Origin: Rebecca billardiae RCC1528
Taxonomy: Eukaryota > Protista > Haptophyta
Direction of reading: 5' to 3'
Assembly: GCA_965240325.2 (NCBI GenBank)
Contig: OZ251227.1
Coordinates: 1,612,001 to 1,676,000 of the forward strand
DNA length: 64,000 nucleotides
The notes beneath the pieces were generated by a model, which made no database searches, was not told where the DNA came from, and saw nothing but the letters and a program-made list of their open reading frames with translations. Positions 15,210-44,584 of the stretch are shown piece by piece. The position numbers and the translations under genes were made by a program. Positions within the stretch are counted from its first letter, which is position 1. Every line of letters starts with the position of its first letter.

Positions 15210-15478
15210 GAGTGCCGTTCTCCCCGGCGAACGAGCAGTGGTGCTGCGCGCGACAGGCTCACCGGTCGCGCAGGATTTGAACCTGCACCGGTGGTGCTGC
15301 ACGGGCTCCGAGCGGCCGGTGCGGCGGTGCCTTGCCGGGCGGCCCGGATCGAGAGCTGGTACTATTTTGGATCGGCCCCGCCGGACTTTTTTCGCTTGCT
15401 GTTGCGGGCGCGCGGGACGGAGAGGCGGGCAGCGGTGACGAGCGAGCGCAGGCCTCGTCGAAGGCGCCGGCCGTCGTG

Positions 15479-17439: not shown

Positions 17440-17471
<32 letters not shown>

Positions 17472-17478
17472 CGGGCGC

Positions 17479-17518
<40 letters not shown>

Positions 17519-20365
17519 GCGGCGGCTTTGCACGAGCAGCTCGCCGTGCTGCGCGCGCAGCTCGAGGCGCAGGCGAGCGCGCACAGCGCCGCGCTCGCCG
17601 AGGTGCGCGCCTCCGCCGCCGACGCCGCCGCCGAGCGCGCGACGCGCGAGGGGTTGGCACAACTCGAGGCGGCGCGCGGCGCGGCCGCGGCAGAGGCGGC
17701 GGCGGCGGAGGCGGCGCGCGAGGCAGTGCAGCAGCAGCTGGACGACGCGGCGGTGATGCACGACGCCGCGCTGGGCGAGGCGCGCGCGCGCGCGCACGCG
17801 GCCGAGGCGCACGCGGCCGAGTCCGAGGCGCGCGCCGCCGCCGCGCTCGACGGCGCGAGGCGCGAGGCGGCCGCTGCGGAGGGCCTGAGGCAGCAGCTGC
17901 GCGCGCTCGGCGGCGGCGGCGGCGCGGACGGCGGCGGCGGCGGCGCGGACGGCGGCGGCGGGCGCGGCGGCGCGCTCGCCGAGGCGCGCTCGCCGCCCAC
18001 CGGCGGTGCGCGGCCGGCGGGCAGCCCCCTGCCCCCGTCGACGCCCTCCTCCGAGGTGCGCTCCGCGCTCGGCGCCTCCGAGGAGCGCGCGCGCAGGGCG
18101 GAGGAGGCGGCGGCGCGCGCGGCCGCGAGCGCGGACCGAGCGCGCGCCGCCGAGGCGGATGCGGTGGCCGCGGCGCGCGCCGAGGCGGCGGACGCGGCGG
18201 AGGCGCGCGCCGCGCTCGCGGCGACGCAGCGCGCGCTCGCCGAGACGTCCGACGCGCTGCGCGCGTGCACGCGCAGCGCCGCCTCCGCCGCCTCCGCCGC
18301 CGGCGCCACAGCCATGCCCGGCGGCGCGGCGCGGCACGGCGGCGCGCCGCCCGCGCCGAGGAGCGACGAGGGCGCGCGCGGCCCGGCGGCGGAGGCGGAG
18401 GCGGCGGAGGCGGCACGCGTGCGGGCGCAGGCGCGCGCGCTCGAGGCGGCGGGCACGGAGCACGCGCGGCGGCTGCAGCGGCTGTGCGACACCCTCGTCG
18501 CCTACGCCGCCGGCGCCACCGCCGTCTCCGCCGCCGCCGAAGCGCCGCGCCCCGCCGCCGAGCCGGCATCGACGCCGCCTCCGCCGCCGGCGCTCGCGGG
18601 CGCGCGCGGCGGCGCGGCGGACGCGCCGCCCTCGCCGTCGGCCGGCGCGCTGCTTGGCGCCTCCGCCGCCGCCGCCCTGAGCTCGGTGGAGGACCTGTGC
18701 GACGCGATCGCGCAGCGCGCGGCGCAGGCGCACGCCGCCGCGCGCGCCGCCGAGGCGCGCGCCCTCTCCGCGCGCGCCGACGCGGCGGACGCGGAGGCGC
18801 GCGCACACGCGGCCGACGCGCGCGCTCGGGACGCGCACGCCGCCGCCGCGCTCGAGCTCGGCTCAGCGGCGGCGCGGCGTGGGGAGCACGGCTTCGGCGG
18901 CACGGCGTACGCGCCGCGCCGCGCCGCGCGCACGCCCTCGCCCGACCGCTCCGACGCGCGCGCCGCCGACAGCCTCCGCCTCGAGCTGGCGGAGACACGC
19001 ACCGCCCTCGCCCGCTCGCGCGCCGAGGCGCAAGAGTTGCGCTCGGCGCTGGCGGGCGCGGACTCGACGCGCGCGCAGCTGCGCTCGGCGCAGACCGAGC
19101 TGCCCACGCTGCGCGCGGAGGTGGCGCGCGCGCGCGCGGACGAGGGCAGCGCGCGGCGCCAGCTCGCCGAGGCCTCCGCCGAGCTCACCGCCGTGCGCGC
19201 GATGAACGAACAGCTGCGCGCGCAACTGGACGCCAGGCTGCGCGCGGACGGTGCGGCGGCGCGCGCCGCCGCCGCCGCGAGCGCGGCGCCGCCGCACGCG
19301 CGCGCGGGCGCCGCGCTCAAGACGCCGACGCTCTCGGGCGCGGGCGCGGGCGCGGGCGTCTCCGCGGCGGCCGACGCCCGCGCCCCGAGCACGCCGCCGC
19401 CGTACGCCCTCCGCCTCAGCCCGGGCGCGGGCAGCGGCGGCGCGCAATCTCGCGAGCGCGAGATTGCAGAGGCGCGGCGCGAGGCGGCGGCACACGCAGA
19501 GGTGGCGGCGCGGCTGAGGCTCGAGCTCGACCTCTCGCGCGCGGCGGCGATGGAGGGGCGCGCGGCGCGCGCGGGCGGCGCGCGGGGCTCGCCGCTCGGC
19601 CTCGGCTACGGCTGCGCGGGGGCAGCCGGCTCGCCCGGCGGCGGCGCCAACGGCTGGGGCGGCGGCGCGGGCGGCGCGGCCGAGGGCGCGGGCGCGGGCG
19701 CGCTCCGCGGCGGCGGCGGCGGCGCGCGCGCGTCCCCGCCCTCGCCCGCCACGGCGGCGGCGGCGGCGGCGGCGGAGAGCGAGCGCAACCAGCTCGCAGC
19801 AGAGCTGATCGCGACGCAGCGGCAGCTCGCCGCGGCCGAGGCGCGCGCCGCCCGCCTCGCCCTCGCCGAGCACGAGCGCACAGGACTGCTGCTGCACGCC
19901 GCACCGCCCGGCGGAGGCGCGGCGGGCGCGCGCTATTTCGCAGCGTCGCCGCCGGGGGTGGCCGCCGGCGCGCCCGCCGCGTCCGAGCTCGCCGAGCTGC
20001 GCGCCTCGCATGCCGCGCTGCGCGCGCGCGCCGCCCTCTCCGACGCGCGCGTCGCCGAGCTCGCCGGCGAGAACGAGGCGCTGCGCGCGCGCGCGGGCGG
20101 TCACGCGCCACAGCCGCACCGCCGCTGCTGGCCGGACGAGCGCTACGAGCAGCACTCGTCTTACTCCAGCGGCGGCGGGGCGCCGCTCGGGTTTGGCGGC
20201 GCGGGATACGCGCCGGGCGCCGAGCGGCGCAGCCCCGCCTCTGCGCGCTCGAGCGGCGCGCATCAGCAGCCGCCGCTGCCGCGCGCCGCGTGCTCGCCGC
20301 ACGCCGCCGCCGGCTCGCCGATGCCGCCACACCCGGGCGGGCCGCTGCCGTCCGGGATGCTGTGA
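15479..20365 (+). CDS. Large Ala/Glu/Arg-rich coiled-coil protein
   Basis: About 1630-codon open frame with heptad-like ELxxLRAxL segments; N-terminal NPF motifs (FANPFAD, DVNPFD). Confidence 0.75.
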
Positions 20366-22166: not shown

Positions 22167-25100
22167 TCAGCCAGCGGCCGGGCGGTCGGCGCGCACAGCG
22201 GCCCAGTCCTCCACGCACGCGCGCATCGCCGCAGCCTGCCGCGCCGCCAGGCCGGACGGCGGGGCCGCGCCCTCGGGCCGCGCGCCGCCGCCCGCGCCCT
22301 GCTCTGGCGCGTGCGCGGCGCCCTCCGCCTCCTCCAAGCGCGCGAGCGCGCACGCGCGCTCGGCGAGCTGCAGCAGCCGCTTGGCGCCGACGGGCCCGGC
22401 GCCGAGCGCGGCTGCGGCCATCGGCTCGAGGGCGGCCGCGTCGATGGGCAGCGCGGCGCGCGCGAGCAGCGCGCGCGCCTCGTCGGCCGTGCGCAGCAGC
22501 GGCACGCGCTGTGTCTCGTCAAAGGCGCCTCGCAGCAGCGCGCAGCTGGGCGCGCGCGGATCGGAGGTCGTGCCGATCACGATGAGCGCCGGAGGCAGGA
22601 GCTCGGCCGCCGCACGACCGCCGGGCGCGTCGGCGTCGACGGTGCCGCCGCCGCCGCCGCCCGGCGCGGCTGGCTCGGCGGCGCCGGTGTGCTGCGGTGC
22701 GCGCGCGCCGAGCGGCTCGCGCAGCAGCGCGCGCAGCGTCGCCGCCACCGCCTCCGAGCCCGCGAGCAGCCTGTCCACGTCGTCGAGCAGCAGCGCGGCG
22801 CGGCGCATCGCGCGCGCCTCGCCGAACGCGGCCGCGAGCGCCGCGCACCGCGCGCCCTCGCCCTCGGCGCCCGCGAGCGCGTCCGCGGGCGTGAGCACGC
22901 GCGCGTAGTCCACCACGCCCTCGGCGGAGGCGAGCGCGGCCGCCCACGCGCCGAGCGCCGTCACGCCCGCGCCCTCGCCCTCCGCGGCGAGCAGCAGCGA
23001 GCGCACGCGCGCGGGCGGCGCGCCGCCGTCCGCGCGCGGCGGCGCCGCGCCACCCTCCTCCGCCGCCGCCGCCGCGCCGCCCACGAAGAGGCGGAGCGAG
23101 CGCTGCAGCCGCGCGTGTGCGGCCGAGGGCGGGGCGGCGCCGTGAAGGGCAAAGCGCGCGCGCAGCTCGTCGTCGCGCTTGCCGAGGGCGGGCGTGATCT
23201 CGCGCAGTGCCAGCTCGAAGTCCGAGGCGCGCACGCGCACGCCGCCCAGACCGTCCGCGTCCGCCTCCGCCGCCGCCGCGTCCGCCGCTGCCTCATCCAG
23301 CGGCGCGGCCGCCGACGGCGCGCCGCCCGGCTCGGCAGCCGCGCCCATCGCGCGCTCGAGGGCGAAGGACGCGGCGGAGCGCACGAGGCCGGCGAGCTCC
23401 GCGCCGGAGAAGTGCTCCGTGCGCTGCGCCAGCGCGCCCGCCGCGCCCGCGTCGTCGATCAGCTCGGCCGCGCCCTCGTCCAGCACGCCGTTGTCGCGCA
23501 TCGCGCGCGTGTGGATGCGGAGGATGTCCCGCCGGCCCGCCGCGTCCGGCAGCGCGACGCGCAGCTGGACCTCGAGGCGGCCCGGGCGGAGGAGGGCCTC
23601 GTCGAGGAGCTCGGGGCGGTTGGTCAGCCCCACGACGAGCACGTTCGGCGCCTCCACCACGCCGTCCATCTTGGCGAGCAGCTGGTTCACCACCGAGTCG
23701 CGCACGCCCGACGAGTCGCCGGACACGGAGCCGCGCGCGCGCGCGATGGCGTCCATCTCGTCGAGGATGATCACGTGCAGCGCGGACGCGTCGCCCGCCG
23801 CGGCGTACTCGGCCTCGGCGGGGGCGAAGAGCTTGCGGATGTTCGCCTCCGCCTCGCCGACGAACTTGGACAGGCACTCCGGCCCGTTCACCACCTGCGG
23901 CTCGCGCGCGCCCAGCAGCCGCGCCAGCTCGCGCGCCAGCAGCGTCTTGCCGCAGCCCGGAGGCCCCGAGAGGAGAATCCCGCGCACGTGCGAGATGCCG
24001 AGCTGCCTGGCCGCGGCGGGGTTGGCGCGCGAGGCGAGCACGCGGCGCACGATCGCGTCGAGCTGCGCCTCGAGCCCGCCCACGTTCTGCGAGAGCGGCG
24101 AGCGCGCGCCGCCGTCCGCGCCGCCGCCCGGCTCGGCGCGGCGCGCGCCGAGCGCGGCCACGCGGCGCGCACTCTCCTCTGCGCCCTCACCCTCGTACAG
24201 CGACGCGTCCTGCACCCGCTGGAAGGCGGCGGCGAGCGGCGCGCGCTCGAGCGGGAGCGGCGCGTACGGCTCGAGCGGCGGCAGGTCCTCCGCGGCGAGC
24301 GTCGCGGGCGGGCGCAGCACCACCTCGAGCAGCGCCGCGCGGCCGAGCGCGCCCGAGTACTCCTGCGTCAGACCGCCGAGCAGCAGCGTCGCGTTGGCGG
24401 CGGTCGGCGCGCCGCTCACGCCGCCAAAGCCGGTGCCCGCCGCCTCGAGGGGCGCGCCGACGGGCGCAAAGTCGCCGTCGCGCGTGAGGCGCAGCTTCGT
24501 GATCTGCGCCGTGCCGACGAGCGGCTTGAGCAGCGTGATCGTCCCGGTCGGCGGCGACGTGAGCGCGACGCGCGAGCGCCGCGCCGCCGCGGCCGCGGCC
24601 GCGGCCGCCTCCGCCGCCTCGCCGCCGTCGGCGCCGCCCGACGCCGGCGGCGGCAAGGGCGCCGGGAGCAGGTGGACGCGCACGTCCCACCGCTTCCCTT
24701 CCGCGTCGCCGCTCACGCGCAGCGTGCGCGCCTCCTCCAGCTCCTCCGCGCCGTCGAGCAGCTGCGCCCAGCTCGCCTCGCCCGCCCGCACGTGCACCTC
24801 GTTCAGCGAGCTCGCGACCGCGTCCCGGAGCTCGTCCTCGAGCCACGTGCCCCACTCGACGCGGCCGGTGCCGCTGCTCTCAGTGCCCACGCCCGTGCAC
24901 TGCTCGATCGCGTCGCGCGCCGAGCGCACCACCGGCCCGAGCGCCGGGTGCTCGTCGGCGCTCGCGCCGTCGCCGCCGTCGCGCCGCAGGTGTGGCACGC
25001 TCACGTGGTACGCGGAGTCGGGTGGTCCGGAGGCGAGGACGCGCGCCCGGAGGCGAGCGACGCGAGACGGCGCGGCGCAGGCGCCCGGGAGGAGCCGCGC

Positions 25101-25175
25101 GCCGTGCCTCGCGAACTTGCCCGCGACGGCCGCGGCGAGCACGGCGAGCAGCGCCGCGCGCATCGACACCCGCAT
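22167..25175 (-). CDS. NSF/Sec18-like AAA+ ATPase with N-terminal signal-peptide-like presequence
   Basis: [70 protein letters not shown]; degenerate D2 domain. Confidence 0.9.
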
Positions 25176-25493
25176 GATTGGGAGCCGCGGGATGCGGCCC
25201 CCGGACCCACGGCCGCGGTGCGCCGGAGCCCGGAATCCCCGCGAGGCCGCCGAGGCGCCAATATTTCGCGCCATTTTTCTCGCGGCACGTCGTCAACTCT
25301 CGGATGTGACTCCCTTGCTCGGATCGTCACTGTGGACTGTGGAGTTCAGAGTGTCCGAGCGACGCTCTCGCTCGCGACGACGGTTTGCACTTTCAACTTT
25401 GCCGCGCTGCGAGCCTTTGGCCGGGCCGGGGGGGCGCGAGCGCGCGGCGCGCAGCAAGAGTGCTCGCGGACGCGGGGTCTACCGGGTGTAGCT

Positions 25494-26524
25494 ATGGTGG
25501 CGACGAAGCGCTCGCGGTCCGCGCGCGAAGCGCCCGAGCCCAGGGGCCGAGGCCATGCGGCGAAGGGCAAGGCGGCCGTGACCAAGGCGGGTGGAAAGAA
25601 GAAGGCCGCGGCCGAGCCCGCCGGCCTCTCCGCTGCGCAGCTCGAGAAGATCCAGAAGGTGATGGACGCGCATGCGCTGCTGCGCGGGGTCGGGAAGGCC
25701 ATCGAGCAGCAGATCGAGCGGCACCCGATGCAGCGCGCGCCGGACGGGGGGGAGACCACGTTCAAGCCCATCGAGATCGAGATGCCCGAGGACCTCTACG
25801 AGCACTCGCGGATCGGCCGCGGCAAGTACGCAAGCGCGTGGCACAGGACGAAGGACAGGCGCGGCGAGGTCGTCCTCAAGCGCGAGCGGCTGCAGCGCGC
25901 GAAGGCGCTGCACAAGCAGGCCTTGCTCGACGAGGGTGCGCGCTCGAGCGCCGAGCGCATCAGCCTCCCGCCCTCTCCCCCCCCGCCCCGGCGCCCGTCC
26001 CGTCCACTGCCCCGTGCCACGCGCGCGCTGCGTGTTGGCCCTGTGCTGAACGCCTCGGCCGCGGCCGTCGACCCCGCGCCATGCGGCGTGCAGATGACGA
26101 CGAGGACGCGCAGCGCTGGTCGCAGCTCTCCAAGAAGCGGCAGGCCAAGTACCTCGAGATGGCCGGCGGCGCGGACGACGCGCACGACGACGAGGGCGCG
26201 GGCGAGGAGGGCGGCCATGCTGAGGATGCGGACGCGGAGGAGGAGGAGGGGGCGCCCTCTTCCACGCTCAAGGCCGAGAGCTGCTCGCTCGTGATGCACC
26301 CGGCGGTGGCGCACGAGACGCTCGCGCTGCCCAAGGAGGGCCCCTGCGTGATGCGCTGCTTCACGCTGCACGGCAAGCAGGAGGTGCACGCGCCGATCAT
26401 CAAGCTGCAGACGCGGTACAACTACGCGCGCCAGACGCTCACAGTCAAGGGCAAGGTGCAGTACAAGAAGTGGGAGGCGCGCGCAGAGGAGGCGGAGGAG
26501 GAGGAGGAGGCCAGCGCGCAGTGA
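25494..26524 (+). CDS. Hypothetical basic/acidic protein; intron 25936-26093
   Basis: MVATKRSRS... exon joined in frame by a GT..CAG intron to DDDEDAQRWSQLSKK...; coding-like codon usage. Confidence 0.7.
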
Positions 26525-26925
26525 GCGCCGTGGTATTGCCCGCGCGCGAGCTTGTGTCGCGCCCCCTCGCGCCCGGCGACGACTCGCAGCCATCGCAAGT
26601 GTGCTCGGCGCGGCGCGCCCTGAGCTGCACGACGCCGATAGCAACAGCGTCGACCAGTTTCGTCCAAGGCTCGTTCAATCGCTCTAAACGCTACTGTACG
26701 TGGTGTGTCCCGGCGATTCCCGCGCACGCGGAACCCGCTGGCAGCTTTGATAACTTTGACAGCTTGATGCCCTGGAGAGTGGAGGACGCCAATGCTTCGG
26801 GATGCCGGTGTTGCAAGTGACCTCGATCCCCTCGGGTCTCCACCGCCGACCACCGCGCGGGGTTAAAGGCCTAACGGGGACTGTGTCTGACACTGTGTGC
26901 GGTCGACTGCGTGCGGATATATCTC

Positions 26926-26954
26926 GAGGGTGCACCAGCCGCGGGCCCCTAACT
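26926..26954 (+). mobile_element. Truncated 3' subterminal motif of the E1-E5 family
   Basis: GAGGGTGCACC..CCGCGGGCCCCTAACTA resembles 56892-56916 but the terminal hairpin is missing. Confidence 0.5.
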
Positions 26955-27245
26955 AAGAGTCTAGCTGCGACGTTGATTTACGATGACGAAAAAGCCGACC
27001 ACGCCGGAACTTCGGCGGTCAGCGGCAAAATAAAATTTGTCGTCAGCAAATAATTCAGACGTGAGGATATATCCCCTATAACTACTAGCTAATACGACAA
27101 TAATCGGCTTAAAGTTAACTCACTACTCAGTTAACTGATAATAACTCGATTCCCGTCGAACGATTGAGCACCTTAGCAGGGCGCCCTTGGCGTCCTACAC
27201 TTAGCAGGGCGCCCTTGGCGTCCTACCACCGTGCAGCCTCACCAT

Positions 27246-27950
27246 TCACAGGCGCGTCACAATGGTGCGGTTCATGAGGAATACTGTCACAGCGCCCGTG
27301 CACGTCATGAGGTGCAGGATCTCCTGCGAGCCGAACGTCTTTGGCCACGGGTCTGGCCAGTGCGATGCGTACGCGACACCACCAAGCAGATACTGCAGCA
27401 GGGAGCCCATGTGCAGCCGCCACTCGGTGGTGGTGCAGCGCGCGTACATCATCGGCGCGGCGGAGAGGACGCATGCCACCATACCGATGGCCACCGCTGT
27501 CTCCGACCACCGGCCGCCGCGCTTGACGAATGAGTGTCGCGCGCCGACACCGAGGCAGCCCACAATGCCTGTGCCGACGATGATTGCCTTCTGCTGCGGA
27601 AGGAGAAGGGTCATCGGGCAGTACGCGCCGGCCACCATCATTAGAATGCCCACATGGTCGAGGTCCGAGATGAACTGCTCCGCAGCGAGGCTCCAGCGCC
27701 GCCGGTGGAACTGCGAGCTCACGCCGAACTGCACCGCCCAGCCGAGGATGAAGCCGAGAGCGCCCCACGTTGCGCGCGGCGTCGTGCAGCGCGAGAGGAG
27801 GTCCGCGGCGAAGAAGGGCGTAAGCGCAAAGAATATTTCGTGGCTGACGCCGCGTAGAGAGGGCTTCGGCTTGGAGCCGTCGCAGTAGAAGTACGTGTAC
27901 CGGTCGCTCCGCTGCGGCCCGTAGCCCAATCTCGTGAGCAAGGCCGCCAT
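27246..27950 (-). CDS. Hemolysin III / PAQR family membrane protein
   Basis: KPSLRGVSH, SSQFHR, DHVGILMMVAGAYCP and WPDPWPKTFGSQEILH motifs; about 7 TM segments. Confidence 0.9.
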   Translation of the reverse strand: MAALLTRLGYGPQRSDRYTYFYCDGSKPKPSLRGVSHEIFFALTPFFAADLLSRCTTPRATWGALGFILGWAVQFGVSSQFHRRRWSLAAEQFISDLDHVGILMMVAGAYCPMTLLLPQQKAIIVGTGIVGCLGVGARHSFVKRGGRWSETAVAIGMVACVLSAAPMMYARCTTTEWRLHMGSLLQYLLGGVAYASHWPDPWPKTFGSQEILHLMTCTGAVTVFLMNRTIVTRL

Positions 27951-28447
27951 TGCTGAATCAAGAAAAGGAAGCGCCCGGATCGCTTGCTCGCCAGCCGCCT
28001 TGCCACGGTGCATCTGACAGCACTTCAGCAATGCACGTGACGGAATTGATGAGAATCGTGGTTATTGGAATCACATGATTGGTGCATGCTTATTTATTGC
28101 TTTCTGTGAAGGACTGTCACGACAACGCGCTGCAGAGTGCAGTCACGCGTTCGTACAGTCGCTTCAGATCATCACAGCGAGACTGCCTCACGGTGCATGT
28201 GTGCTGTGCTGTCTGTCTGCGACCTGTTCAACTGGCACGGGTCGAGATCGGTGACACAGGCCGTCGCCGCGTGTCAGTCGTCAAGTGGTCAACCCAGTCA
28301 CGCATCGCCATCGGCACGGCGCGTCGTGCGGACCGGAGCCACGAGTCCCTGCAAGCCCGATCACCACTGTGAGGCTGCACCGCGGCTGACGTGCGCGTGC
28401 GAAGCCATGCGTCACACAGGTGCAAATGGCGTGCCCAACACATGGAC

Positions 28448-29257
28448 TCATGGCGTCAGCATGCGAAGCAAGTCCGAGCGAAGCGTCGCGTCCGACTGGA
28501 AGACGCCGTGCAGCGCGCGCGTCGTCGTGCGCGCACCCGGCTGCTGCACACCGCGCATGGACATGCACATGTGTGCGCACTCGACGATCACGGCGACGCC
28601 CTTGGGCGCGAGGTGCTCCATGAGCGCGGTGGCGACCTGCACCGGCCGTCCAACGAGGGGATGCGGTGTGAGGGGGCGGATGGCCTGCGCCGTGTACGCG
28701 CGCGCGCGCACACGCACCTGCTCTGTCAACCTCTCCTGCACCTGCAGCCTGCGTGCGTACATACCCACCAGCCGGCCGAGCTTGGACAGGCCGATCACCT
28801 TCCCGTCGGGCACGTAAGCGACGTGCGCCTTACCGTAGAACGGGAGCATGTGATGCTCGCACAGCGAGTGCACGCCGATGTCGCGCACAATGACCATGTC
28901 GCCGCACCGATCCTCGTTAAAGATGGCATCGCCGATCACGTCGGCGGGGGACAAGAGGTAGCCGGCCGTGCAGTCGAGGAGGGCCTTCGACATGCGCGCC
29001 GGGGTGTCGACGAGGCCCTCGCGCTCCGGGTCCTCGCCGAGGCACTCAAGCAGCGTGCGCACCGCCGCCTCCATCCGCTCGCGCTTCCGCTTTTTCGCGA
29101 TGCCGGCTGAGCCAGCGTTGGCGTCCTGGTCGTCGCGGCTGTGCACTGCATTGACAACCTCGTCAGACGCGTACAGTACGTCGACAGGCCGCTTTGCGCT
29201 CGGGCTAGGCGAGTCCGCCCGCTTGCCCTCGGCCTCCAGCGTGTCCTCGGCGATCAT
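28448..29257 (-). CDS. GCH1: GTP cyclohydrolase I; in-frame intron 28637-28717
   Basis: [40 protein letters not shown] and HMCMSMRGV; zinc ligands intact. Confidence 0.97.
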
Positions 29258-29549
29258 CTCCGCCGTTGAATGGGTGTGGGGACGTGGCCGTGCGACGCCC
29301 TCAGTTGGCCGGGGCAGCTGACGAACGCAGCTCGCGCGCCTCAAATAATTCGATCGATGAATACGGGGCGGGATCCGGCTCTATCTGCTGAAGATCCCGG
29401 TCCGGTCCGGGGGGCGGGGGAAGCATTTGCGCTCGCCAGGGAGCCACCCTGGCGAGCGCCGCCCAGTGAGCCTCGCCGTCGCCGTCGGGCAAGTGTCGTG
29501 GCTCCGGCGGAAGGAGGTTAGACGGCGAGCCCCGCGCGCTGCAGTGGCT

Positions 29550-30839
29550 ATGACTGGTCAGCGAGCCGTGACCGTCGTGGCGGTGCTGGTCCTGTCGGTC
29601 GCACGGGCGCACCCGGACTACATCGACACGTCCCTCTGCGGCGAGGCGGCGCACCCGGACGGGCCCCACAAGGGACACGGCGCCCCGGTGCTTGACAGAG
29701 ACCTCAGCCTCCGCTTCTTCTGGGCAACACCAGACAATTCTGTGGCCCTTGACGATGCCACCGAGTACCCCGCCTACGACGAGTGGGTGGCACAGAACGG
29801 TCACCTCGAGCTGCCGCCGGGCGCGTTTGCCCCTGGCGAGCGCCTGGTGGCCCTCCTCGCCTGCGGGGGCGGGCGCACGTGCCAGGTGCTCATGACAGCC
29901 ACGGCGGGTGCGTTTGAAGACCGCGGGATCAATAACGACGGGGACGCGCAGCAAGACGCGGCAGTTCGCTGCAGCGGGCGCCGTGTGGACGTCCGCGGAG
30001 CCAATTTGGCCTACCACCCCCTCGTGTGGACTGCCCCGGCAGCCGGGTCGGGCCCCGTGGCATTCGGCGTGACCGCCGCCGCGTCCCAGTCCTCCTCCTA
30101 TCTCCGCCTCACGCCTTCCCACGTCGTTGCCGCAAACGCGTCTCTGGCGCGGCCCGGGGGGGCACCTGCAGGTCCGCCCGCACCCCGGGAGAAGCGGATG
30201 GCCCTCGTGCTCGTGCTCCACGGCTGGTTTGCGGCGCTTGCCTTCGCCGTCGCCTTTCCCCTCGCGGCCGCCCTTGCGTGGGCCACGCGCCCACTCCGGA
30301 GAGGGCGGTCAGCCACGGCTGCGCAGCCAGAGCCTTCCCACGCTCCTGTTGGCGCACTCGCGGGGTTGGCCTCCAAGCGCGTGTCGGCACACAAGCGACT
30401 CGCCTACACTGGGGCAGTGCTCGCAGCCGTGGCCTTCGTCCTCGTCTTCGCCTACAACAGCGCCCCGGGCTTGGACCACTTCTGGGACTCCCACAGCCAT
30501 TGGGGCATCGCTGCCCTCATCCTTGCAGCGAATCAAGTGCAGGGGGGGCTCCTGCGCCCACCAAATGCGGGCGCGGGCGAGAGGCCTTCGAGCGAGCGCC
30601 TGCGGTGGCGCGCCGTCCACGGCATTGCGGGGCTCCTCACCCTCACTGCCGGTGTCGTGGCCACGTGGAAGGGTCTGAATGACGCGGCTCACGAGGGCGC
30701 CGTTGCGGGCGCGCTGCTCGCGCGGATCGTGACGACGGTGTGGCTGTGTATTCTCATCATGGCTGTTCTTGCAGGGGAGGTGCGCCGGCGATTCGCTACC
30801 GAGGCTGTGCTTGAGACGGGGGCTGCCGCCGAGAAATGA
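29550..30839 (+). CDS. Signal peptide + Reeler-like domain + cytochrome b561 domain (ferric-chelate-reductase-like)
   Basis: Four heme-ligand-type His in TM helices (LHGW, AHKRL, HSHWG, VHGIAG), QVQGGLLRP and RLRWRAVH; WTAPAAGSGPVAF is Reeler-like. Confidence 0.8.
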   Translation: MTGQRAVTVVAVLVLSVARAHPDYIDTSLCGEAAHPDGPHKGHGAPVLDRDLSLRFFWATPDNSVALDDATEYPAYDEWVAQNGHLELPPGAFAPGERLVALLACGGGRTCQVLMTATAGAFEDRGINNDGDAQQDAAVRCSGRRVDVRGANLAYHPLVWTAPAAGSGPVAFGVTAAASQSSSYLRLTPSHVVAANASLARPGGAPAGPPAPREKRMALVLVLHGWFAALAFAVAFPLAAALAWATRPLRRGRSATAAQPEPSHAPVGALAGLASKRVSAHKRLAYTGAVLAAVAFVLVFAYNSAPGLDHFWDSHSHWGIAALILAANQVQGGLLRPPNAGAGERPSSERLRWRAVHGIAGLLTLTAGVVATWKGLNDAAHEGAVAGALLARIVTTVWLCILIMAVLAGEVRRRFATEAVLETGAAAEK

Positions 30840-31334
30840 CGAATGAGGCGCCGCCGCCGCGCCGGCCTAAGGCCAGTAACTATGCAAGGCCAAAGGTGCA
30901 CGCGTCGGCCGCGCGCGCGCGCGCATACGAACGTCGTAGACGTATTATCGGTGTCACTCACAAACGTGTCTCGGATTCGCCCACCTATAAGTCGGCGATT
31001 GCCGATTGCCTTCGGCTGGCAGGCAGTGGCAGATCACAACGGTGCGGATCCGTACGGGCTGAGGGGAGAATCTCACATATTGACGCAATCAGACCGCGTC
31101 GTAATCAAGTCGGCAGCGATATCGTCTCACAGGCTGTTTTCACACCTAAATCCACCGCTACAAAAATCCCTCAAATCCTGCTGCGCGCATCTGATCCATT
31201 TCATCCTCTTTTTTGATTTTGCGGAGCACGTGCGCCGGCCCCCGCCCCCCCCGCCCCCCGGCTTTCGCTCGTAACGCTCAGACCTTTGGCGGGGGGCGGG
31301 GGGGTGCGCCATAACACCGAATACGGTTACTTAG

Positions 31335-32816
31335 CTAGTACTTGCGTCGCACTGCGTCCGCCACGCGTAACACGTCCACCATCTCCTTCACATCGTGAAC
31401 GCGGTGAATGTCCACAGCTGGGACACAACACGCTGTGGCAGCCGCGGTTGCCCATACGCGATCTGCAGCTGTCGGGGCGTGCACGATATCCTCATCGCTC
31501 ACGGGCCACAGGCCTGTCGCGCTGTGCTGGAGCACACCGCCGAGCCAGGCCTTGCGCGACAGCCCCATGAGCACCGGCAGGTCTCCCAGCCCCGCGCGCA
31601 CCACATCCAGGTGCTGCAAGACGGCCAAGTTATCCGCAGGGGACTTGCTGATACCGAGCCCAGGGTCCATGACCACGTCGAAGCGGGGCAGCCCTGCGGC
31701 GAGGGCGAGCTGGGTCTGCGCTCCGAGCTCAGCCACCACAGCTTCTGCCACGCCCCCAGGCCAGCGCGAGAAGTCCCCCTGCCCTGAGCCCAACCCTTTG
31801 CGCACCCATGCAGCTTTGGACATGCGTGCGCTGTACTTGCGTGTGCTCTCCTCCATGCAGTGCATGAGGATGAAGGGCACTCCCAGGCGGGTGGCCAATG
31901 GCGCCATGCGCTCGTCGACAGTGCCACCAGATATGTCGTTCACAATGTCTGCACCGGCGGCAACAGCCTCCTCGGCCACCGCGGCGCTGAATGTGTCCAC
32001 GGAGATGGGTACCGAGAGCCCACTCGCTCGCAAGGCACGCACGGCTGGCACGACGCGCGCCATCTCGCGCGCCTCCGCAGCACCAGTCACGCCCGTCGCA
32101 TAGCCTCCAATGTCGATCACGTCGGCCCCTGCCGCCACCATCGCGAGGGCGTGGCGGCTAGCAGCCTCTAGCGCGGCCGCGCTGGGCTCATCCTTCACGT
32201 GTGGCGTATCCGAGTCGGGGGACATGTTCAGGATTCCCATCACGTAACTGCGCGCGCCCCAGGTCCACACCTGCGCGGGCGAGCCCGACAAAGGGCAGGC
32301 CGCGCGCGCGCCAAAGGCACGGGGTAGGGCGGGTACCACCCGCTCGCCTGCGAGCTCAGAAACCGTGCGGCTGGTCGGCGGGAGCCGCAAATCACCCGCC
32401 ACCTCGGCAAGCGCCTGCAGCAGCGCCTGGTGCCTCTCGCCGCCCCGCGGCGCAGGCGCGTCGAGCGCGAGGCCGCCGCCGGCGTAGCTGGCGTCGTCTA
32501 GTGCGACGAGATCGACATCCGTCGCTGTTGTGGAGCTGGGCAGTGCCACCGCCGCTGCTCGAACGCTCGCAGCTACCGCCGTGGCAGCGGCGAGCAGCTC
32601 AACCACGGAGGCACTCGTCTCCACCCCTGCAACTGCGTGAAGCGTCGCGTCAGCCGCGGGAACGCCCCTAGCCTCCGGAGGTGGCGATGGAGAGCATACA
32701 AGCGACGATGTGCGCACGACCCGCCCGACGTTGCCCAGCTCGCGCAGCGCGGCGCGCACGGCTGCGACCCGGTCCCCTGAGCCCGCACGGAGGCCGAACC
32801 ACGCGACGCGCACCAT
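31335..32816 (-). CDS. Divergent HPPK-DHPS (FolK-FolP) fusion
   Basis: YVMGILN, DVIDIGG, ISVDT, IVNDISGG, ILMH, DPGLG, GLSRK and RVHDV; the N-terminal ~160 aa follow the HPPK pattern (GDR..AL..L, SSL, VET...ELL, DVDLV, LAEV). Confidence 0.93.
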   Translation of the reverse strand: MVRVAWFGLRAGSGDRVAAVRAALRELGNVGRVVRTSSLVCSPSPPPEARGVPAADATLHAVAGVETSASVVELLAAATAVAASVRAAAVALPSSTTATDVDLVALDDASYAGGGLALDAPAPRGGERHQALLQALAEVAGDLRLPPTSRTVSELAGERVVPALPRAFGARAACPLSGSPAQVWTWGARSYVMGILNMSPDSDTPHVKDEPSAAALEAASRHALAMVAAGADVIDIGGYATGVTGAAEAREMARVVPAVRALRASGLSVPISVDTFSAAVAEEAVAAGADIVNDISGGTVDERMAPLATRLGVPFILMHCMEESTRKYSARMSKAAWVRKGLGSGQGDFSRWPGGVAEAVVAELGAQTQLALAAGLPRFDVVMDPGLGISKSPADNLAVLQHLDVVRAGLGDLPVLMGLSRKAWLGGVLQHSATGLWPVSDEDIVHAPTAADRVWATAAATACCVPAVDIHRVHDVKEMVDVLRVADAVRRKY

Positions 32817-32891
32817 GCTGCACGTAACCTGGAGGTCCGGGCCGGTTGCTGGAGCTCCTGACCTCCCCTGTCCTGACCAATCGTACCATAA

Positions 32892-33504
32892 TGTATGGAG
32901 CGCTCGTTGGAACTTGAGCGGGGGTGGAACTTGACATCGCATTTCCCAGCGAAGTGCCCCATCTCGGCGGGGCTGGCACGGTCGGCACACGCTCCTGAGC
33001 GCTCGCTTTGCGGTGCGGCAGGCCTTGGACAGCCCAGACAGACATGCCGCGACCGAATTACCGGGCCATGCGCGCACCACACCCGCGCTACATGGCCTAC
33101 GCGCTGGACGACTGAGAGGCAACGCCGAACCACTGCATTCCACTGCCCCGCATGCACCCCGAGTCACCTTCAGAGCGCGTCGACGAGCGCAGAGCGGGTG
33201 CGTGGGAGTTCGACCAACTCGTGTACCTTCTTGCAAGCACCAGCGGCGAGGTCGCAAGCCGAACCTTGACCAGCCGTGGAACTTGAGCTGGTCGGCAGCA
33301 AAACCACCGTTCAACCCGGATCAAGTTAGCAGCGTGCGAGGAGGAGGCGCGGTGCGCGTCCGCGGCTGGCGAGAGGCGTCCGGACCGTGCCGTTCTCGGC
33401 CGCGCCCGCGCGCTTCCCGCCGCCGCGGGCCCCGTGTACGCCCGTCGTCGCCCTCGCCGCGCGGGCGCCAAACCGGCGTCAAGTTCCAACGAGCGCTCCA
33501 TACA
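32892..33504. mobile_element. MITE-like element with 26-bp perfect inverted repeat
   Basis: TGTATGGAGCGCTCGTTGGAACTTGA (32892-32917) is the reverse complement of 33479-33504; extra GGAACTTGA motifs lie inside. Confidence 0.75.
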
Positions 33505-33540
33505 CGGTCGAGCACCCCTCGCTGTGCGAGGGGTCCGGCG

Positions 33541-34116
33541 GAAAGGACAGTGGCACCCTGGTCAATCTGGCCCCGCGCCCCTCTCGCGGGCTCTGGCGCG
33601 CGAACGCTTTGTCACTAGTGGCTGCCGAGCCGTAGATTGGCGCTCCGTGCACCAACAAAGACATCCCCAGCCGCATGTTGCCACTCGACACCTCGTCTCG
33701 CCTCGCGCGGAGCCAACTTGTGGTGTGCGGGAGCTACCCGAAGCACAGGCTGTGCTGCGCGCGGCGCGTCGCGAGTCGGGAGTGCATCGGAGCACACGGC
33801 GGTGCATGACGTGCCATGAGGCAGACATGAGTATGTATTCAACGGATTGCGCGTGCGACGCCGTCGCGATGCACTGTTGACCCGCCACGCGTGTCGCTAC
33901 ACGGCCCAGTGTGCTTCGAGTGGCTCCCGCACACCACAAGTTGGCTCCGCGCGAGGCAAGACGAGGTGTCGAGTGGCAACATGCGGCTGGGGATGTCTTT
34001 GTTGGTGCACGGAGCGCCAATCTACGGCTCGGCGGCCACTAGTGGATACGCGTTCGCGCGCCAGAGCCCGCGAGAGGGGCGCGGGGCCAGATTGACCTGG
34101 GTGCCACTGTCCTTTC
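33541..34116. mobile_element. Foldback element with ~205-bp inverted arms
   Basis: 33541-33747 matches the reverse complement of ~33910-34116 with scattered mismatches. Confidence 0.85.
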
Positions 34117-35230
34117 TGTTGGCGGTGTCGCAGAGCGACCCGCCGGCCGTTACAGGGCCATTAGAAGGCAGTGTACTAATTCTATGATTTAATTAAAGAC
34201 ACAGTCACGAGGGCGCAGCTCTCCTGATTCGTCTGTAGTGGTACTCCACCCGTCCCAGAAACCCCGTGAGCCCGTCTTCGGCTCAGCGGGCTCATGACAT
34301 TCCATGGAATGTCATGAGCGCCCGGACTATTATTAAAACTGACCGCCACGCACTAGTTGCGGGTATTTTTCAATACCACGGACTCGACTCGAGCCTTGAC
34401 GTATGGGGCTGGGACGGGTGGGTCGAAGCTTGCAGCAGTGGCAGTGGTGTGAGCATTCTATTCCTTTGGTGTGAGCACGTTGACGTTCAGGTCGCCATCA
34501 TGGTGGACGTCGTTGTTATCGTCGTCGACGTCGTCAGGCCCACCGGGGAGATGTATGGGTACTTTATCCATACCGTACTCGGTACGTATGGCGGGCCGTA
34601 GGTCCGCCCCTTGTAGTGCCCGGGAAAAAGATAAGAAAAAGATAAGAAAAAGAAAATCGCCTCGCCAAGAAAAGAATATCGCCTCGCTCACTACCGGGCG
34701 CCCTCGCAGCTCCCACTGGGGACGCTCGGCCGAAAACCATCTGGCGCCTGGCGCGGAGCGCGTGGGCGGCGCGCGCCGAATCCAACGCCGGCGCGGACAT
34801 CGTGAGAGGACTCCCGAACGGTGCTTTCGCCCGATTCGCGATTGCTGCCCTCGTCGTCTCGCGTGCAGGTCGAACGAGGGCCAAAGTCGACGCGTTTGGA
34901 GGTACGCTCGGCGCGTCGACACGATCGTGCGACCTGGGGCGGTCCTCGCCCGACTTGCACGTCGAGCGCTCGCACGAGCCATAGCATCAAGCGCTGCGCA
35001 CGATGGCCGCCTCGCTCGATTCACCGTCGCGCGTCGGGCTCGGTGCGGAAAGGCCCTCATCACGAGGTGTCTCGCGGGCGGGAAGCGCCATCCCACGCGA
35101 CGCAAGATTTGGCGCGGCCTTCTGAACACCATAACCGGAATCCACACACCGGACTATCCAGGTGCCCCGGTTGGCAAGGTCGGGCGCATGCAAATCCGTT
35201 TGCTACGGTCGGTGGCGTTGTCCGGCCTGC

Positions 35231-35812
35231 ATGGCGTCGACGGTGGCCAATGCGACGGAGGGGCAGCGCAAAGCGGCGTACGACGCGCACTGCACGCACC
35301 TGCTGGGTCTGCCGCCGTGGCAGGAATCGCGTCTTCGCGAGTCGGCGACTGAGGCGACAGCGCGCTATCACCGATCCCAGATGCGCACTGTCCGCGACGA
35401 GATGAAACGTCGCGCGTGCAGAATCGCCGCCCCATCCTCCACCATGGCACGGGCGCTGCGGGACGAGGCCGACGTCGTGAAGCCGGTGACGCATGCGCTG
35501 CGCTTCCTGTGCCTGCTCGAGCAGCGCGTGCCCACCCTCGATCGCGAGTGGCACACGCTCTCGCACTGCGCGCGCGCGCACCACCAACAGCTCCTGATAC
35601 CGCCGAACGTGCGAGTGCCGGACCTGTCGCACGGAGCGGCGAGCGCCGACGAACGCTTGGACCTGGACGCGCTGTTGCGCAGCGTGGCGGCCGTGCACGG
35701 CGCCGACGCGACCTTCGCCGAACCTCGTGCCCGGAGCGGACATTGGCATCCTCGCGACACACGATCTCAGCTGGCGGCAGGAGGAGATGCTCTTTCGTCA
35801 TCCTGCCCGTAA
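35231..35812 (+). pseudogene. Unrecognised ORF remnant carried inside the TIR element
   Basis: Coding-like frame (MASTVANA...) that appears to continue in another frame (GADIGILATHDLSWRQEEMLF); no family recognised. Confidence 0.35.
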
Positions 35813-36232
35813 AAACGCTAAAAGGCGCGAACCCGCTGGGGAAATATTGCGACAGCACTGGCACGGCCCGCCGACCCCCCCCGCCCGCCAGGGCACAGTT
35901 TTCACTTGTTTAGGAAATCGTCAAATAATAGGAAGTTCTTGACCAGCCTATGGTAGCGCGTACGCGACCGCCCGGGGAGCACGGGGCAGGCTCGACCAGC
36001 TGCTACCCGCGGCTGAGACTGCCAGCTGACATCCGGACCTGCACTTTCGCCCTTGCTCGGGGCACAGCAGGTCCATGCGAGCCGCGCAGCGCAGGTGGAT
36101 CGCGCTTCAGCAGCTCAAGGCCGCGCTCAAGCTTTACGATCGCGGTGCAGGCTATGCTCTGCCACCAACGCCGACTTCGTGTCGACGATCGGGCACTGCC
36201 GCCGACGAATCAGGAGACCCGCGTCGTCCTAC

Positions 36233-36501
36233 CAAGGGGCTTACAAAATACCACTGGGGGCGAAAGCGCCAGTGCGGAGCCCCGTCGCGACCCCGGCTCC
36301 TCAAACGGAAAGTGTCCGGTAGCTCTTATGGAAAAAAGACCGGAATGCCTTGAAAGAATACGAGATGTGTCGACAGATTACCCGCTTTCCCGGATTCAAA
36401 CTTCTCGCACAGTGTTTTCCACTCACCGGACACAATCCGTTTGAGGAGCCGGGGTGGCGACGACTGTGTTTCGCCCCCAGTGGTATTTTGTAAGCCCCTT
36501 G
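36233..36501. mobile_element. 269-bp MITE, P-element-like termini
   Basis: CAAGGGGCTTACAAAATACCACTGGGGGCGAAA TIR; 7-bp duplication GTCCTAC at 36226-36232 and 36502-36508. Confidence 0.9.
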
Positions 36502-36583
36502 GTCCTACCTGTGTCGTTAAATCATAGAATGGGTATGGGGGTAGTGATAGATCCCCGGGCGGGCCGCACCTGTCTTGGCCACG

Positions 36584-37198
36584 ATGGCGTCGCCCAAATT
36601 CGACGTCGTCTTGGCGTGCTGCCGCAAAACTCTCATGATCGGAAGATGCGGGAAGCTGCCATGGCCGCGCCTGCAACTTGATTACCACTTCTACCATCAG
36701 CTTGTGAGCTCCACGCGCGACCCGCTCAAGCGTAACGCCATGATCATGGGTACGCGCACATTCAGCAACATGCAGAAATACAGCCCCTGGGCGTTCGACC
36801 TGGGCCTCCTAGCCCTCCCTGTGGTCCTCACCCGCCGTCCGGAAGCGGATGCCCGGGCGCTCTTCAAGATACCCAAGGACGTGCTTGTTGCTGAATCTCT
36901 CGAACACGCGATGCAGCTCGTGGCAACGGACGAGGTTGTCGGTGACGTGGCCGTCGAGAAGGCATATGTTCTTGGGGGAGCTGCGCTGTATGCGGAAGCC
37001 CTCGCATCGGACAGGCTCGAGCGCGCGTATGTGACGTGGGTCGATCTGCTACATGAGGAACGCACCCCTGATGACTTGTGCCTTCCTGCTGGTTGCTTTG
37101 ATCAACTCGTGTTGGATCCGCAATGTTCCCGTGCAGGGAAGGTTCACACGAGCTCACATGGGATTGGTTTTGAGTTCAACACGTTTGTCCGAGGATGA
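36584..37198 (+). CDS. DHFR: Divergent monofunctional dihydrofolate reductase
   Basis: IGRCGKLPWPRLQLD, DPLKRNAMIMGTRTF, VLTR, SLEHA, VLGGAALYAEAL, YVT and GIGFEFNTFVR; stop codon with no thymidylate synthase domain following. Confidence 0.92.
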   Translation: MASPKFDVVLACCRKTLMIGRCGKLPWPRLQLDYHFYHQLVSSTRDPLKRNAMIMGTRTFSNMQKYSPWAFDLGLLALPVVLTRRPEADARALFKIPKDVLVAESLEHAMQLVATDEVVGDVAVEKAYVLGGAALYAEALASDRLERAYVTWVDLLHEERTPDDLCLPAGCFDQLVLDPQCSRAGKVHTSSHGIGFEFNTFVRG

Positions 37199-37228
37199 TT
37201 CTGACTCAATTAGATACGACGGACCGGC

Positions 37229-37345
37229 CGAGAGAGAGAGAGAGAGCCGAGAGAGAGAGAGCCGAGACGGAGAGAGAGAGCTGAGAGAGAGAGAGAGAGA
37301 GAGCTGAGAGAGTGAGAGACGGAGTCACTAGCGAAAGAGAGCGAG
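37229..37345 (+). repeat. Imperfect (GA)n microsatellite
   Basis: Direct reading. Confidence 0.9.
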
Positions 37346-42971: not shown

Positions 42972-44420
42972 TCATCGCGAGCCTCCTGACGTGTCCGGCG
43001 CACCCTCATCACTCACTTCACCGTTGGCCGGAGGCCGGGTAGTGCCTGTGGGACCCAAAGCTCTTGCGAGCATTGCGCCAAGTGCCAGCGTGGCAACGCA
43101 TAGCGCGAGGAGGAGGAGGAAGGGTGCGTGGACGTCAAGGGGAAATGGAAGCTCGCTGTGCGCGAAGGCGGCGTAGATGCTACCCATCGCAATGGGAGTG
43201 GCACCTCGGCCGAGACCTGACACGGACGCCACGAGGCCGTTGACCAAGCCCGCGTCTGCTGCGGTGACTAGGCTGTTGGTCATGAGCTGCAGCGCAATGA
43301 AGATGAGGGTGCCTGCTGCGCCGCGCACGGCTGCGATCAGCATCAGCGCAGGCCAGAGGAGCTGCGCAGGGAGCCTGGGCAGCACTGGCACGAGCGCAAT
43401 GTAGCAGCCGGCGAGCGCCTGGCCCAGCTCGAGGCAGCCCGGCAGGCCCAAGCGGCCGGCTGTCGCGGGAAAGGCGAGTGGTCCGATGACCAGAACAATG
43501 CCGGTCGGTGCGAGGGCCATCCCGAGCTGCGCGGGGTCGAGGCCGAGCCCCCTGCTGCGGCTCGCGAGGAAGATGGGGACGACCTCGGCGACGCCCCCAA
43601 AGTAGAGCTGCACGGCGAGGTGGACGCCGATGGTGATGGGCACTGCCGCGTGGAGCCCCCACACGCGCCGAGACTCGCGCGGTGGAGCGGCCGCGGTCGC
43701 AGCAGCCGGTGCACTGGCAGACTCTCCGGCCGCCTCGTCCGCAAGACGGCGCCACCCCCGAGCAGGGACCGGCTCGTCGAAGAAGGCCAGCGCCACGAGC
43801 CCGACGCCGGGGCCAACAATCGCCGCACCCACGTACACGAGCAGAAATGGGTGGCGGTCGAAGACCGTGCCGCCGAGGAGCTGCGGGAAGGCGTCAGCCG
43901 GGCGGCTCAGCAGCGCGGCCAGCAGCGGTCCCAGCGCGTGCCCTGCGCCGTATGCCACGCCAAGGGCGGAGAAGCCGCGCGCCCGATTGTCCTCGGTGGT
44001 GATCTCGCGCATGGTAGCGTAGCAGATGCCTGCAGTCGCGTGCAGGAGTCCGCAGAGGCTGCGCGCGGCGAGCGCCTGCAAGAGGGTCGTCGCCATGCCA
44101 AAAGCGACAAGGCACGCGGCGGTGGTCGTCAGGCCAAGGGCGAGGACGCGCCTGCGGCCGTACACGTCGCTCATGCGGCCCCAGAAGGCGCCGACCGCGA
44201 AGGTGGAGAGGAAGTAGGCCGACTGGAGGAGACCTGCAGCGTAGCCAACACCCTCCTCAGCCACCCCAAAGGTCTGGACGAGGAAGGGGAGGGTCGGCAG
44301 CGGCGCCGTGAAGGCTAGAACCTCGCCCATGGTCACGAGCACGAGGATAACCACCGAACGCCAGGGCAGGGGTGCGGACTCAGGCGCCGGGGGAGCCTCC
44401 CCGGCGGGAGGGGCCCACAT
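42972..44420 (-). CDS. MFS transporter (ZIF-like/DHA1)
   Basis: GYAAGLL.SAYF, WGRMSDVYGRRRV, ARSLCGLL, REITTEDNRARGFS and FDRHPFLL motifs. Confidence 0.92.
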   Translation of the reverse strand: MWAPPAGEAPPAPESAPLPWRSVVILVLVTMGEVLAFTAPLPTLPFLVQTFGVAEEGVGYAAGLLQSAYFLSTFAVGAFWGRMSDVYGRRRVLALGLTTTAACLVAFGMATTLLQALAARSLCGLLHATAGICYATMREITTEDNRARGFSALGVAYGAGHALGPLLAALLSRPADAFPQLLGGTVFDRHPFLLVYVGAAIVGPGVGLVALAFFDEPVPARGWRRLADEAAGESASAPAAATAAAPPRESRRVWGLHAAVPITIGVHLAVQLYFGGVAEVVPIFLASRSRGLGLDPAQLGMALAPTGIVLVIGPLAFPATAGRLGLPGCLELGQALAGCYIALVPVLPRLPAQLLWPALMLIAAVRGAAGTLIFIALQLMTNSLVTAADAGLVNGLVASVSGLGRGATPIAMGSIYAAFAHSELPFPLDVHAPFLLLLALCVATLALGAMLARALGPTGTTRPPANGEVSDEGAPDTSGGSR

Positions 44421-44584
44421 CTCCGCCTCGCTCGCAGCCCGCACGGTTCCTCTCACGGCCAGCAGCCGGGCGCGCGACCGCGCGGCCGGGCTGCCGGCGA
44501 ACAGCACAGTACGGCCCTTGACTCTGGGTTCCTGACGAACGTTCCTGATTCCTGAACCCATCCTGATTTGAGCCGACGGCCAGC

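Follow-up and report, generated by a model that had tools for sequence, protein, structure and literature searches.

The 64,000-nucleotide stretch of DNA analysed here (the window) comes from the haptophyte Rebecca billardiae RCC1528 (contig OZ251227.1, positions 1,612,001 to 1,676,000 of the forward strand). It is GC-rich (0.61-0.85 per 2-kb block) and dense in genes, and at 27.2-37.2 kb it carries a run of five genes, which encode, in order, a HlyIII/PAQR membrane protein, GTP cyclohydrolase I (GCH1), a cytochrome b561 protein, an HPPK-DHPS fusion and a stand-alone DHFR (Table 1). Pfam, NCBIfam and fold searches confirmed all five at the positions given in a preliminary description of this DNA, with the b561 gene interleaved among the three pterin/folate genes, which lie within 8.8 kb, and the HlyIII/PAQR gene adjoining them. 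The same description had claimed that DHPS and DHFR are both altered where the p-aminobenzoate (pABA)-glutamate half of folate is recognized, with the pterin-binding residues kept, and a column-by-column comparison with 120 DHPS and 145 DHFR sequences bears this out. Judging from these residues, we tentatively favour, at somewhat less than an even chance, the reading that the two enzymes are neofunctionalized, lineage-specific copies of folate enzymes that act on a non-folate pterin in a shared pathway. In what follows, the window DHPS, HPPK and DHFR are the copies at this locus.

Table 1. Features of the pterin/folate gene region (positions are those of the window).
Feature	Position	Strand	Basis or remark
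HlyIII/PAQR membrane protein	27246..28031	-	PF03006, E 3.4e-23
GTP cyclohydrolase I (GCH1)	28448..29257	-	PF01227, E 1e-66
GCH1 exons	29257-28718 and 28636-28448	-	product 242 aa
GCH1 intron, 81 nt, in-frame, GT..AG	28717-28637	-	comparison with relatives
GCH1-b561 spacer, 292 bp	29258..29549		gene coordinates
Signal peptide, Reeler-like domain and cytochrome b561 membrane domain, 429 aa	29550..30839	+	PF03188, 33.5 bits
HPPK-DHPS fusion	31335..32816	-	Pterin_bind PF00809, TIGR01496
DHPS domain, aa 181-493	31335..32276	-	PF00809, TIGR01496
HPPK domain, aa 1-165	32322..32816	-	PF01288, 20.1 bits
DHPS-DHFR spacer, 3.76 kb, repeat-filled	32817..36574		self-complementary matches
Foldback element, about 576 bp	33541-34116		self-complementary 84.6% over 590 bp
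Foldback element, about 273 bp	36231-36503		self-complementary 70.7% over 300 bp
Stand-alone DHFR	36575..37198	+	PF00186, 35.5 bits

The listed open reading frame (ORF) of the fusion extends to 33314, its first 166 codons being repeat sequence; the gene call on public contigs begins at 32816 and gives a protein of 493 residues. Its two domains were aligned with 119 database homologues together with E. coli FolP and FolK (K-12 record), the columns being given in E. coli numbering, and those conserved in 90% or more of the sequences were counted as highly conserved. The window DHPS scores 179.2 bits on PF00809 (cut-off 25.5) and 184.2 on TIGR01496 (cut-off 162.6), and its modelled TIM barrel matches solved DHPS structures with TM-scores of 0.86-0.91, normalized to the target chain (Foldseek). 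The closest relative found is at most 41% identical, and the branch length of the domain, 0.84, is not extreme among eukaryotic DHPS. It keeps 48 of the 56 highly conserved columns, and the pocket for pterin and pyrophosphate is complete (N22, D96, N115, D185, S219, R220, K221, R255 and H257). Six of the eight changes are found in loop 1, in loop 2 or at F190 (Fisher p 3e-4). Loop 1 carries T24S and G32P and is devoid of Phe altogether (Phe28 in E. coli numbering); in loop 2, S61 is Ala and the R63-P64 pair is deleted; and F190 has become Ile. None of the other 120 DHPS sequences varies at P64 or F190. Loops 1 and 2 of DHPS bind pyrophosphate and magnesium and form the pABA site (PMC10328974). 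The AlphaFold2 (AF2) model of the fusion has a confident barrel and is poor in loop 1, loop 2, an insertion and the catalytic loops of HPPK, the last with a per-residue confidence (pLDDT) below 50.

The HPPK half of the same protein has fared differently. Its PF01288 score lies under the cut-off of 25.7 bits, and of its 30 highly conserved columns 17 have changed. In literature numbering, the losses include R82 (R82A), R92 (R92T), H115 (H115A), F123 and N55, and of the catalytic residues only D95, D97 and R121 are retained; no FolB remnant was found upstream of it. By its residues the domain is degenerate, and with those five positions lost the fusion, and the cluster as a whole, would be unable to make the DHPS substrate itself. 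The two parts of this one gene thus stand in sharp contrast, conserved columns being kept at 86% in the DHPS domain and at 43% in HPPK (p 1e-4), which argues that the DHPS part was shielded by selection after HPPK had been released.

The DHFR gene lies head-to-head with the fusion gene. Its ORF encodes 207 residues, or 204 when read from the first ATG, at 36584; the protein exceeds the PF00186 cut-off of 25 bits. Its columns were compared using E. coli FolA as the ruler. The catalytic Asp27 is kept, as are A7, I14, G15, P21, W22, G43, T46, G95, G96, Y100 and T113. The seven residues L28, F31, K32, I50, R52, L54 and R57 (E. coli numbering), which make up the p-aminobenzoyl-glutamate (pABG) contact set known for DHFR from the literature, are all replaced (L28Y, F31Y, K32H, I50M, R52S, L54W and R57D), even though Arg57 is conserved in 97% of DHFR sequences. 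Three basic tail contacts have thereby become His, Ser and Asp, and three hydrophobic ones Tyr, Tyr and Trp, a set of replacements which suggests that the tail of the substrate would not be anionic. The neighbouring T35, S49 and N59 are also changed, five residues are inserted where Arg57 would lie, and the segment from P71 to V83 contains neither Arg nor Lys. Outside the wider pABG region, the retention of conserved columns is 12 of 14 at the 90% threshold and 23 of 26 at the 80% threshold. The enrichment of changes gives p 0.007-0.05 for the strict contact set and p 7e-4 to 9e-6 for the wider region, which was drawn partly after seeing the data. The AF2 model has a pLDDT of 90.2, lowest at the insertion, and matches solved DHFR structures (Foldseek E 2e-15, TM-score about 0.8). 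Taken outside their pABA and pABG sites, the window DHPS and DHFR keep 86-96% of their highly conserved columns; such a concentration of losses in the pABA/glutamate sites points to a changed co-substrate rather than to uniform decay.

GCH1, the first enzyme of the pathway, had been described as intact, and so it is. It scores 213.6 on the FolE equivalog model TIGR00063 (cut-off 181.6), and the zinc-site motifs CEHH and HMCM are present once the 81-nt intron is removed. This segment is missing from the transcript-derived and annotated relatives, whereas DNA-derived relatives have an insert at the same position. The intron position is common to other Pavlovales-like GCH1 genes, and gene callers that work from DNA read through it, which leaves 27 spurious residues in database proteins. 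The nearest named relatives, from Pavlovales sp. CCMP2436 and a Pavlova transcriptome, are 64-70% identical, which makes the alga look like one of the Pavlovales; another comparison puts the CCMP2436 protein at 72% identity. Compared with CCMP2436, the nonsynonymous (dN) and synonymous (dS) divergences of GCH1 are 0.21 and 0.90; the dN of the window copy (0.21-0.22) is to be set against 0.09 between two other Pavlovales-like GCH1 genes at similar dS, so that its dN/dS is about 0.23-0.33, versus 0.14 for those two species. The roughly doubled dN implies that this lineage evolves faster or else that the window copy has to some degree been relaxed or has adapted.

Four public contigs (Logan L001-L004; 1.7 and 6.6 kb) are 100% identical to the window and cover 24586-32920 without a gap; the public contigs carry GCH1, b561, HlyIII and DHPS. 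They were considered as transcripts and rejected, given the gap-free tiling and the GCH1 intron, whose retention marks them as DNA.

As for the origin of the window DHFR, an exhaustive HMMER search of 1.8 billion representatives gave best relatives at 49-55% identity, all of them canonical; these are whole or fragmentary DHFR-TS proteins and include one from CCMP2436. In the tree it falls in a clade with Pavlovales DHFR-TS (support 100/99), outside the canonical subclade (97/89), and by this placement it is a descendant of the Pavlovales DHFR-TS lineage. Its divergence from the canonical relatives amounts to a dN of about 0.5 and a dS of 1.9 or more, which is saturated, as compared with a dN of 0.15 and a dS of 0.8-0.9 among the canonical Pavlovales DHFRs themselves. 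The dN/dS calculation proposed in the preliminary description gives a pairwise value below about 0.3 against canonical Pavlovales DHFR, from a saturated dS. One candidate orthologue, a 189-residue stand-alone DHFR of the same clade (P0251), was rejected, as it keeps Arg57, is 37% identical and sits on an AT-rich contig beside a UvrD helicase. This contig, a 1419-bp metagenome scaffold (L058) on which the DHFR, of the Pavlovales DHFR-TS type, is head-to-head with the UvrD-family helicase gene, may belong to a haptophyte virus or to another protist. A viral origin of the window genes was likewise discarded, as no relatives were found in IMG/VR.

It could be argued that nothing unusual is made here, and that the genome has no other HPPK-DHPS or DHFR, these genes forming a normal folate pathway, clustered but still producing dihydropteroate and tetrahydrofolate. 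The window DHPS does clear the TIGR01496 equivalog cut-off, its branch length is within the eukaryotic range, and the canonical copies that our reading places elsewhere in the genome are inferred, not seen. Yet a fusion whose HPPK has lost R82, R92, H115, F123 and N55 cannot make its own substrate, two residues that are invariant in DHPS are gone, and the Arg of nearly all DHFR sequences is an Asp. In bikonts, DHFR normally forms one protein with thymidylate synthase, as it does in the related Pavlovales sequences, which are canonical DHFR-TS proteins, whereas no thymidylate synthase remnant was found after the window DHFR. In addition, the dS to CCMP2436 is 2.2 for the window DHFR and 0.9 for GCH1, a hint that the DHFR copies parted before the species did; a drop in GC content at third codon positions (GC3), however, inflates the estimate. 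The nearest canonical DHFR-TS and HPPK-DHPS sequences were traced to other samples, and their contigs share no repeats with the window. On balance we consider an ordinary clustered pathway very improbable, and canonical copies are presumably present elsewhere in the genome.

Several observations weigh against neofunctionalization, and most of them can be read in favour of its main rival, namely that the window genes are redundant duplicates under relaxed selection that are becoming pseudogenes, their linkage to GCH1 being a historical accident. The HPPK domain has already degenerated. The terminal branch of the window DHFR is 1.44, against 0.12-0.16 in the canonical relatives, a roughly tenfold difference, and the protein has lost 8 of 20 highly conserved columns in total, including two residues of the NADPH loops, G13 and R44. 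No other gene of the window has so low a GC3 (0.67, against 0.75-0.96), a value near the GC of local non-coding DNA and compatible with weak expression or relaxed selection. Repeats, stacked over 3.8 kb, occupy what would be the shared promoter of the DHPS and DHFR genes. Loop 2 also aids the release of pyrophosphate, and to judge from its changes the catalysis by the window DHPS may be lost. Support for expression was not found, no RNA run being listed and the matching public contigs all being DNA. Searches of 5.8 billion proteins, 1.8 billion representatives and metagenome and viral contigs yielded no orthologue of either the window DHPS or the window DHFR. Finally, the preliminary description had proposed to look in related algae for the linkage of the five genes. 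Two related species do not have it around GCH1: the other four genes are not present in the 20-kb GCH1 locus of CCMP2436 or on the 6-kb GCH1 contig of the second relative.

Decay, however, would be expected to spread evenly, while the changes seen here cluster in the pABA and pABG sites (in DHPS at p 3e-4, in DHFR at 0.007 or lower, with the strict-set range reaching 0.05), and the residues for pterin and pyrophosphate and most of those for NADPH are intact. The sharp difference in retention between DHPS and HPPK in one gene is also at odds with it. Neither ORF is broken by a frameshift or a stop anywhere along the whole homologous span; at the local base composition, a frame of such length would stay free of stops with a probability of 7e-4 (DHFR) or 2e-5 (the fusion). 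Random decay, moreover, leaves unexplained why copies of two families should stand beside GCH1. We regard decay as rather unlikely.

The linkage itself deserves attention. With 14,000-20,000 genes in a genome, three of 10-20 pathway genes would be expected in one five-gene run 2e-5 to 3e-4 times per genome, and linkage by chance is very unlikely. The run contains three non-homologous genes of one pathway, adjacent beyond chance, as expected of a eukaryotic metabolic gene cluster. No further pterin or folate family was found among the larger ORFs of the window, including the scanned flanks, in agreement with the earlier statement that no DHNA, FPGS or pABA gene is present, and no methanopterin-dependent genes were seen in the window. 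The claim that the cluster is a biosynthetic one built from folate genes stands as far as the linkage and the remodelling of both sites are concerned, but not in its entirety; the degenerate HPPK would leave the cluster unable to supply the DHPS substrate alone.

Adjacency need not mean one pathway, and the genes may be functional in separate roles; for example, the window DHFR could be a salvage reductase for dihydropterin or dihydrobiopterin, and the window DHPS a non-catalytic pterin-binding or regulatory protein. Pterin pockets kept beside co-substrate sites that are lost would agree with such roles, as would the loss of the loop-2 Arg-Pro pair and S61, which may abolish the chemistry of DHPS (PMC10328974). 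The b561 and HlyIII genes, foreign to the pathway, and the linkage not conserved in relatives can be counted on the same side. Against this, three such genes would come together by chance no more than 3e-4 times per genome, and a substrate altered for both is the simplest explanation of why two consecutive enzymes should have lost the same half of folate. Separate roles therefore appear distinctly unlikely to us.

Neofunctionalization in a shared pathway accordingly remains the reading that we favour. A shift to a non-folate pterin substrate is suggested by several features: both enzymes have lost, at specific sites, the recognition of the same half of folate; the pterin and pyrophosphate sites and most of the NADPH site are intact, as are both ORFs; and the two genes are linked to GCH1. 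The intact GCH1 would provide the pterin precursor, and the window HPPK would be an inactive relic, the activated pterin coming from a canonical HPPK elsewhere. In the TIM barrel of the window DHPS, the pocket for a 6-substituted 7,8-dihydropterin diphosphate would be intact under a rebuilt co-substrate lid, so that the protein might couple the pterin to a nucleophile other than pABA, or might merely bind the pterin. The window DHFR, using NADPH and the retained catalytic Asp, would then reduce the 7,8-dihydropterin ring of a substrate with a non-anionic tail. In its most specific form, which is conceivable but which we consider unlikely, the locus would be a cluster for a new pterin conjugate (such as a cofactor, pigment or signalling molecule), put together from duplicated folate enzymes, in which the window DHPS adds a non-pABA, probably non-anionic nucleophile and the window DHFR reduces the product. 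Expression of the genes and their action in one pathway are presumed in the favoured reading, as is the nature of any product.

Of the two membrane proteins, the b561 protein had been linked to the pterins by a possible redox coupling. This suggestion was not upheld: the protein is of the Reeler-b561, ferric-chelate-reductase-like type, for which no tie to pterins is known or was found. Its nearest Atlas clusters are proteins with Reeler and b561 domains (scores 0.92 and 0.91); its N-terminal domain has no Pfam name, and the Atlas relatives come from green algae and animals and resemble ferric-chelate reductase 1. The b561 gene is head-to-head with GCH1, and the spacer between them is possibly a shared promoter. 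The HlyIII/PAQR gene is called at 234 residues on the DNA contigs L003 and L004, with the start probably near 27950, and is a mere neighbour without an apparent tie to pterins. Two genes for MFS transporters, at 9180-10670 (+) and 42972-44612 (-), lie 17 kb upstream and 6 kb downstream of the region, and both match MFS_1, not the folate-biopterin transporter family. A 1677-codon ORF at 15332-20365 lies in DNA of 0.84 GC, where there are several long overlapping ORFs on both strands, and belongs to no Pfam family. No riboswitch or other RNA family reached the gathering thresholds in an Rfam scan.

The spacer between the DHPS and DHFR genes contains the two foldback elements of Table 1. Contigs from other sequencing runs that match 31300-37250 pile up almost only on repeats at 32.9-36.2 kb, with a depth of up to 140, and this segment matches them at 95-99% identity, which indicates multi-copy repeats. 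Just downstream of the DHPS gene, at 31210-31231, there is a G-rich low-complexity run, and two public assemblies made independently both have contig breaks there.

Few drug targets are as conserved or as thoroughly studied as the enzymes of folate metabolism, and natural variants that keep the pterin chemistry while dropping the recognition of pABA-glutamate are rare, the clearest precedent being the methanopterin pathway of archaea and methylotrophs. Should our reading hold, two consecutive remodelled enzymes beside the first enzyme of the pathway would point to an undescribed pterin metabolite in an alga and to a new eukaryotic metabolic cluster built from duplicated genes of primary metabolism. 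If the genes are decaying duplicates instead, the locus would be a clean case of function being lost domain by domain.

Among known proteins, the HPPK-DHPS fusions of yeast (FOL1, 2bmb) and Arabidopsis (the cytosolic isoform, 7mpy) are the first Foldseek matches of the window fusion (E 1e-28 and 2e-27, TM-score 0.72-0.81) and have the same domain order and fold, and in the tree the window DHPS groups with the eukaryotic fusions. Like the Arabidopsis cytosolic isoform, the window protein is without an N-terminal targeting extension, as read from its sequence. Yet the known HPPK-DHPS isoforms keep the loop-1 Phe, the loop-2 Arg-Pro, F190, the HPPK catalytic residues and both activities, whereas the window protein has lost the first three of these features and most of the HPPK catalytic residues. 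In a similar manner, the Pavlovales DHFR-TS proteins (KAJ1616002.1 of CCMP2436 and the metagenomic P0244 and P0245) belong to the same clade as the window DHFR, at 47-55% identity, and share with it the fold and several motifs, among them the catalytic Asp and the Gly-Gly motif for NADPH; they differ in that they have a thymidylate synthase domain, canonical pABG contacts, a shorter branch and no five-residue insertion at the Arg57 site.

Metabolic gene clusters are known in eukaryotes from algal nitrate assimilation and from the specialized metabolism of fungi and plants. The present locus departs from them in that two unrelated genes are mixed in, along with 3.8 kb of repeats, and that the linkage is not kept in two relatives, and resembles them in having three non-homologous genes of one pathway within 9 kb, partly head-to-head. 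In methanopterin synthesis, a DHPS-type enzyme joins the same activated pterin to a different amine. The window DHPS is not a member of that family, scoring 19 bits on the archaeal DHPS-like model of methanopterin synthesis, TIGR00284 (cut-off 256.65). A parallel to the window DHFR is offered by DmrA, the dihydromethanopterin reductase, which arose from DHFR and reduces another pterin conjugate (PMC6193120). DmrA belongs to a bacterial lineage and the window DHFR to the haptophyte DHFR-TS lineage, and by analogy the same logic, that of a DHFR copy retuned for a pterin with a different tail, may have operated in both. A cluster for a new conjugate, if that is what this locus is, would be an independent algal re-run of the divergence of methanopterin from folate biosynthesis.

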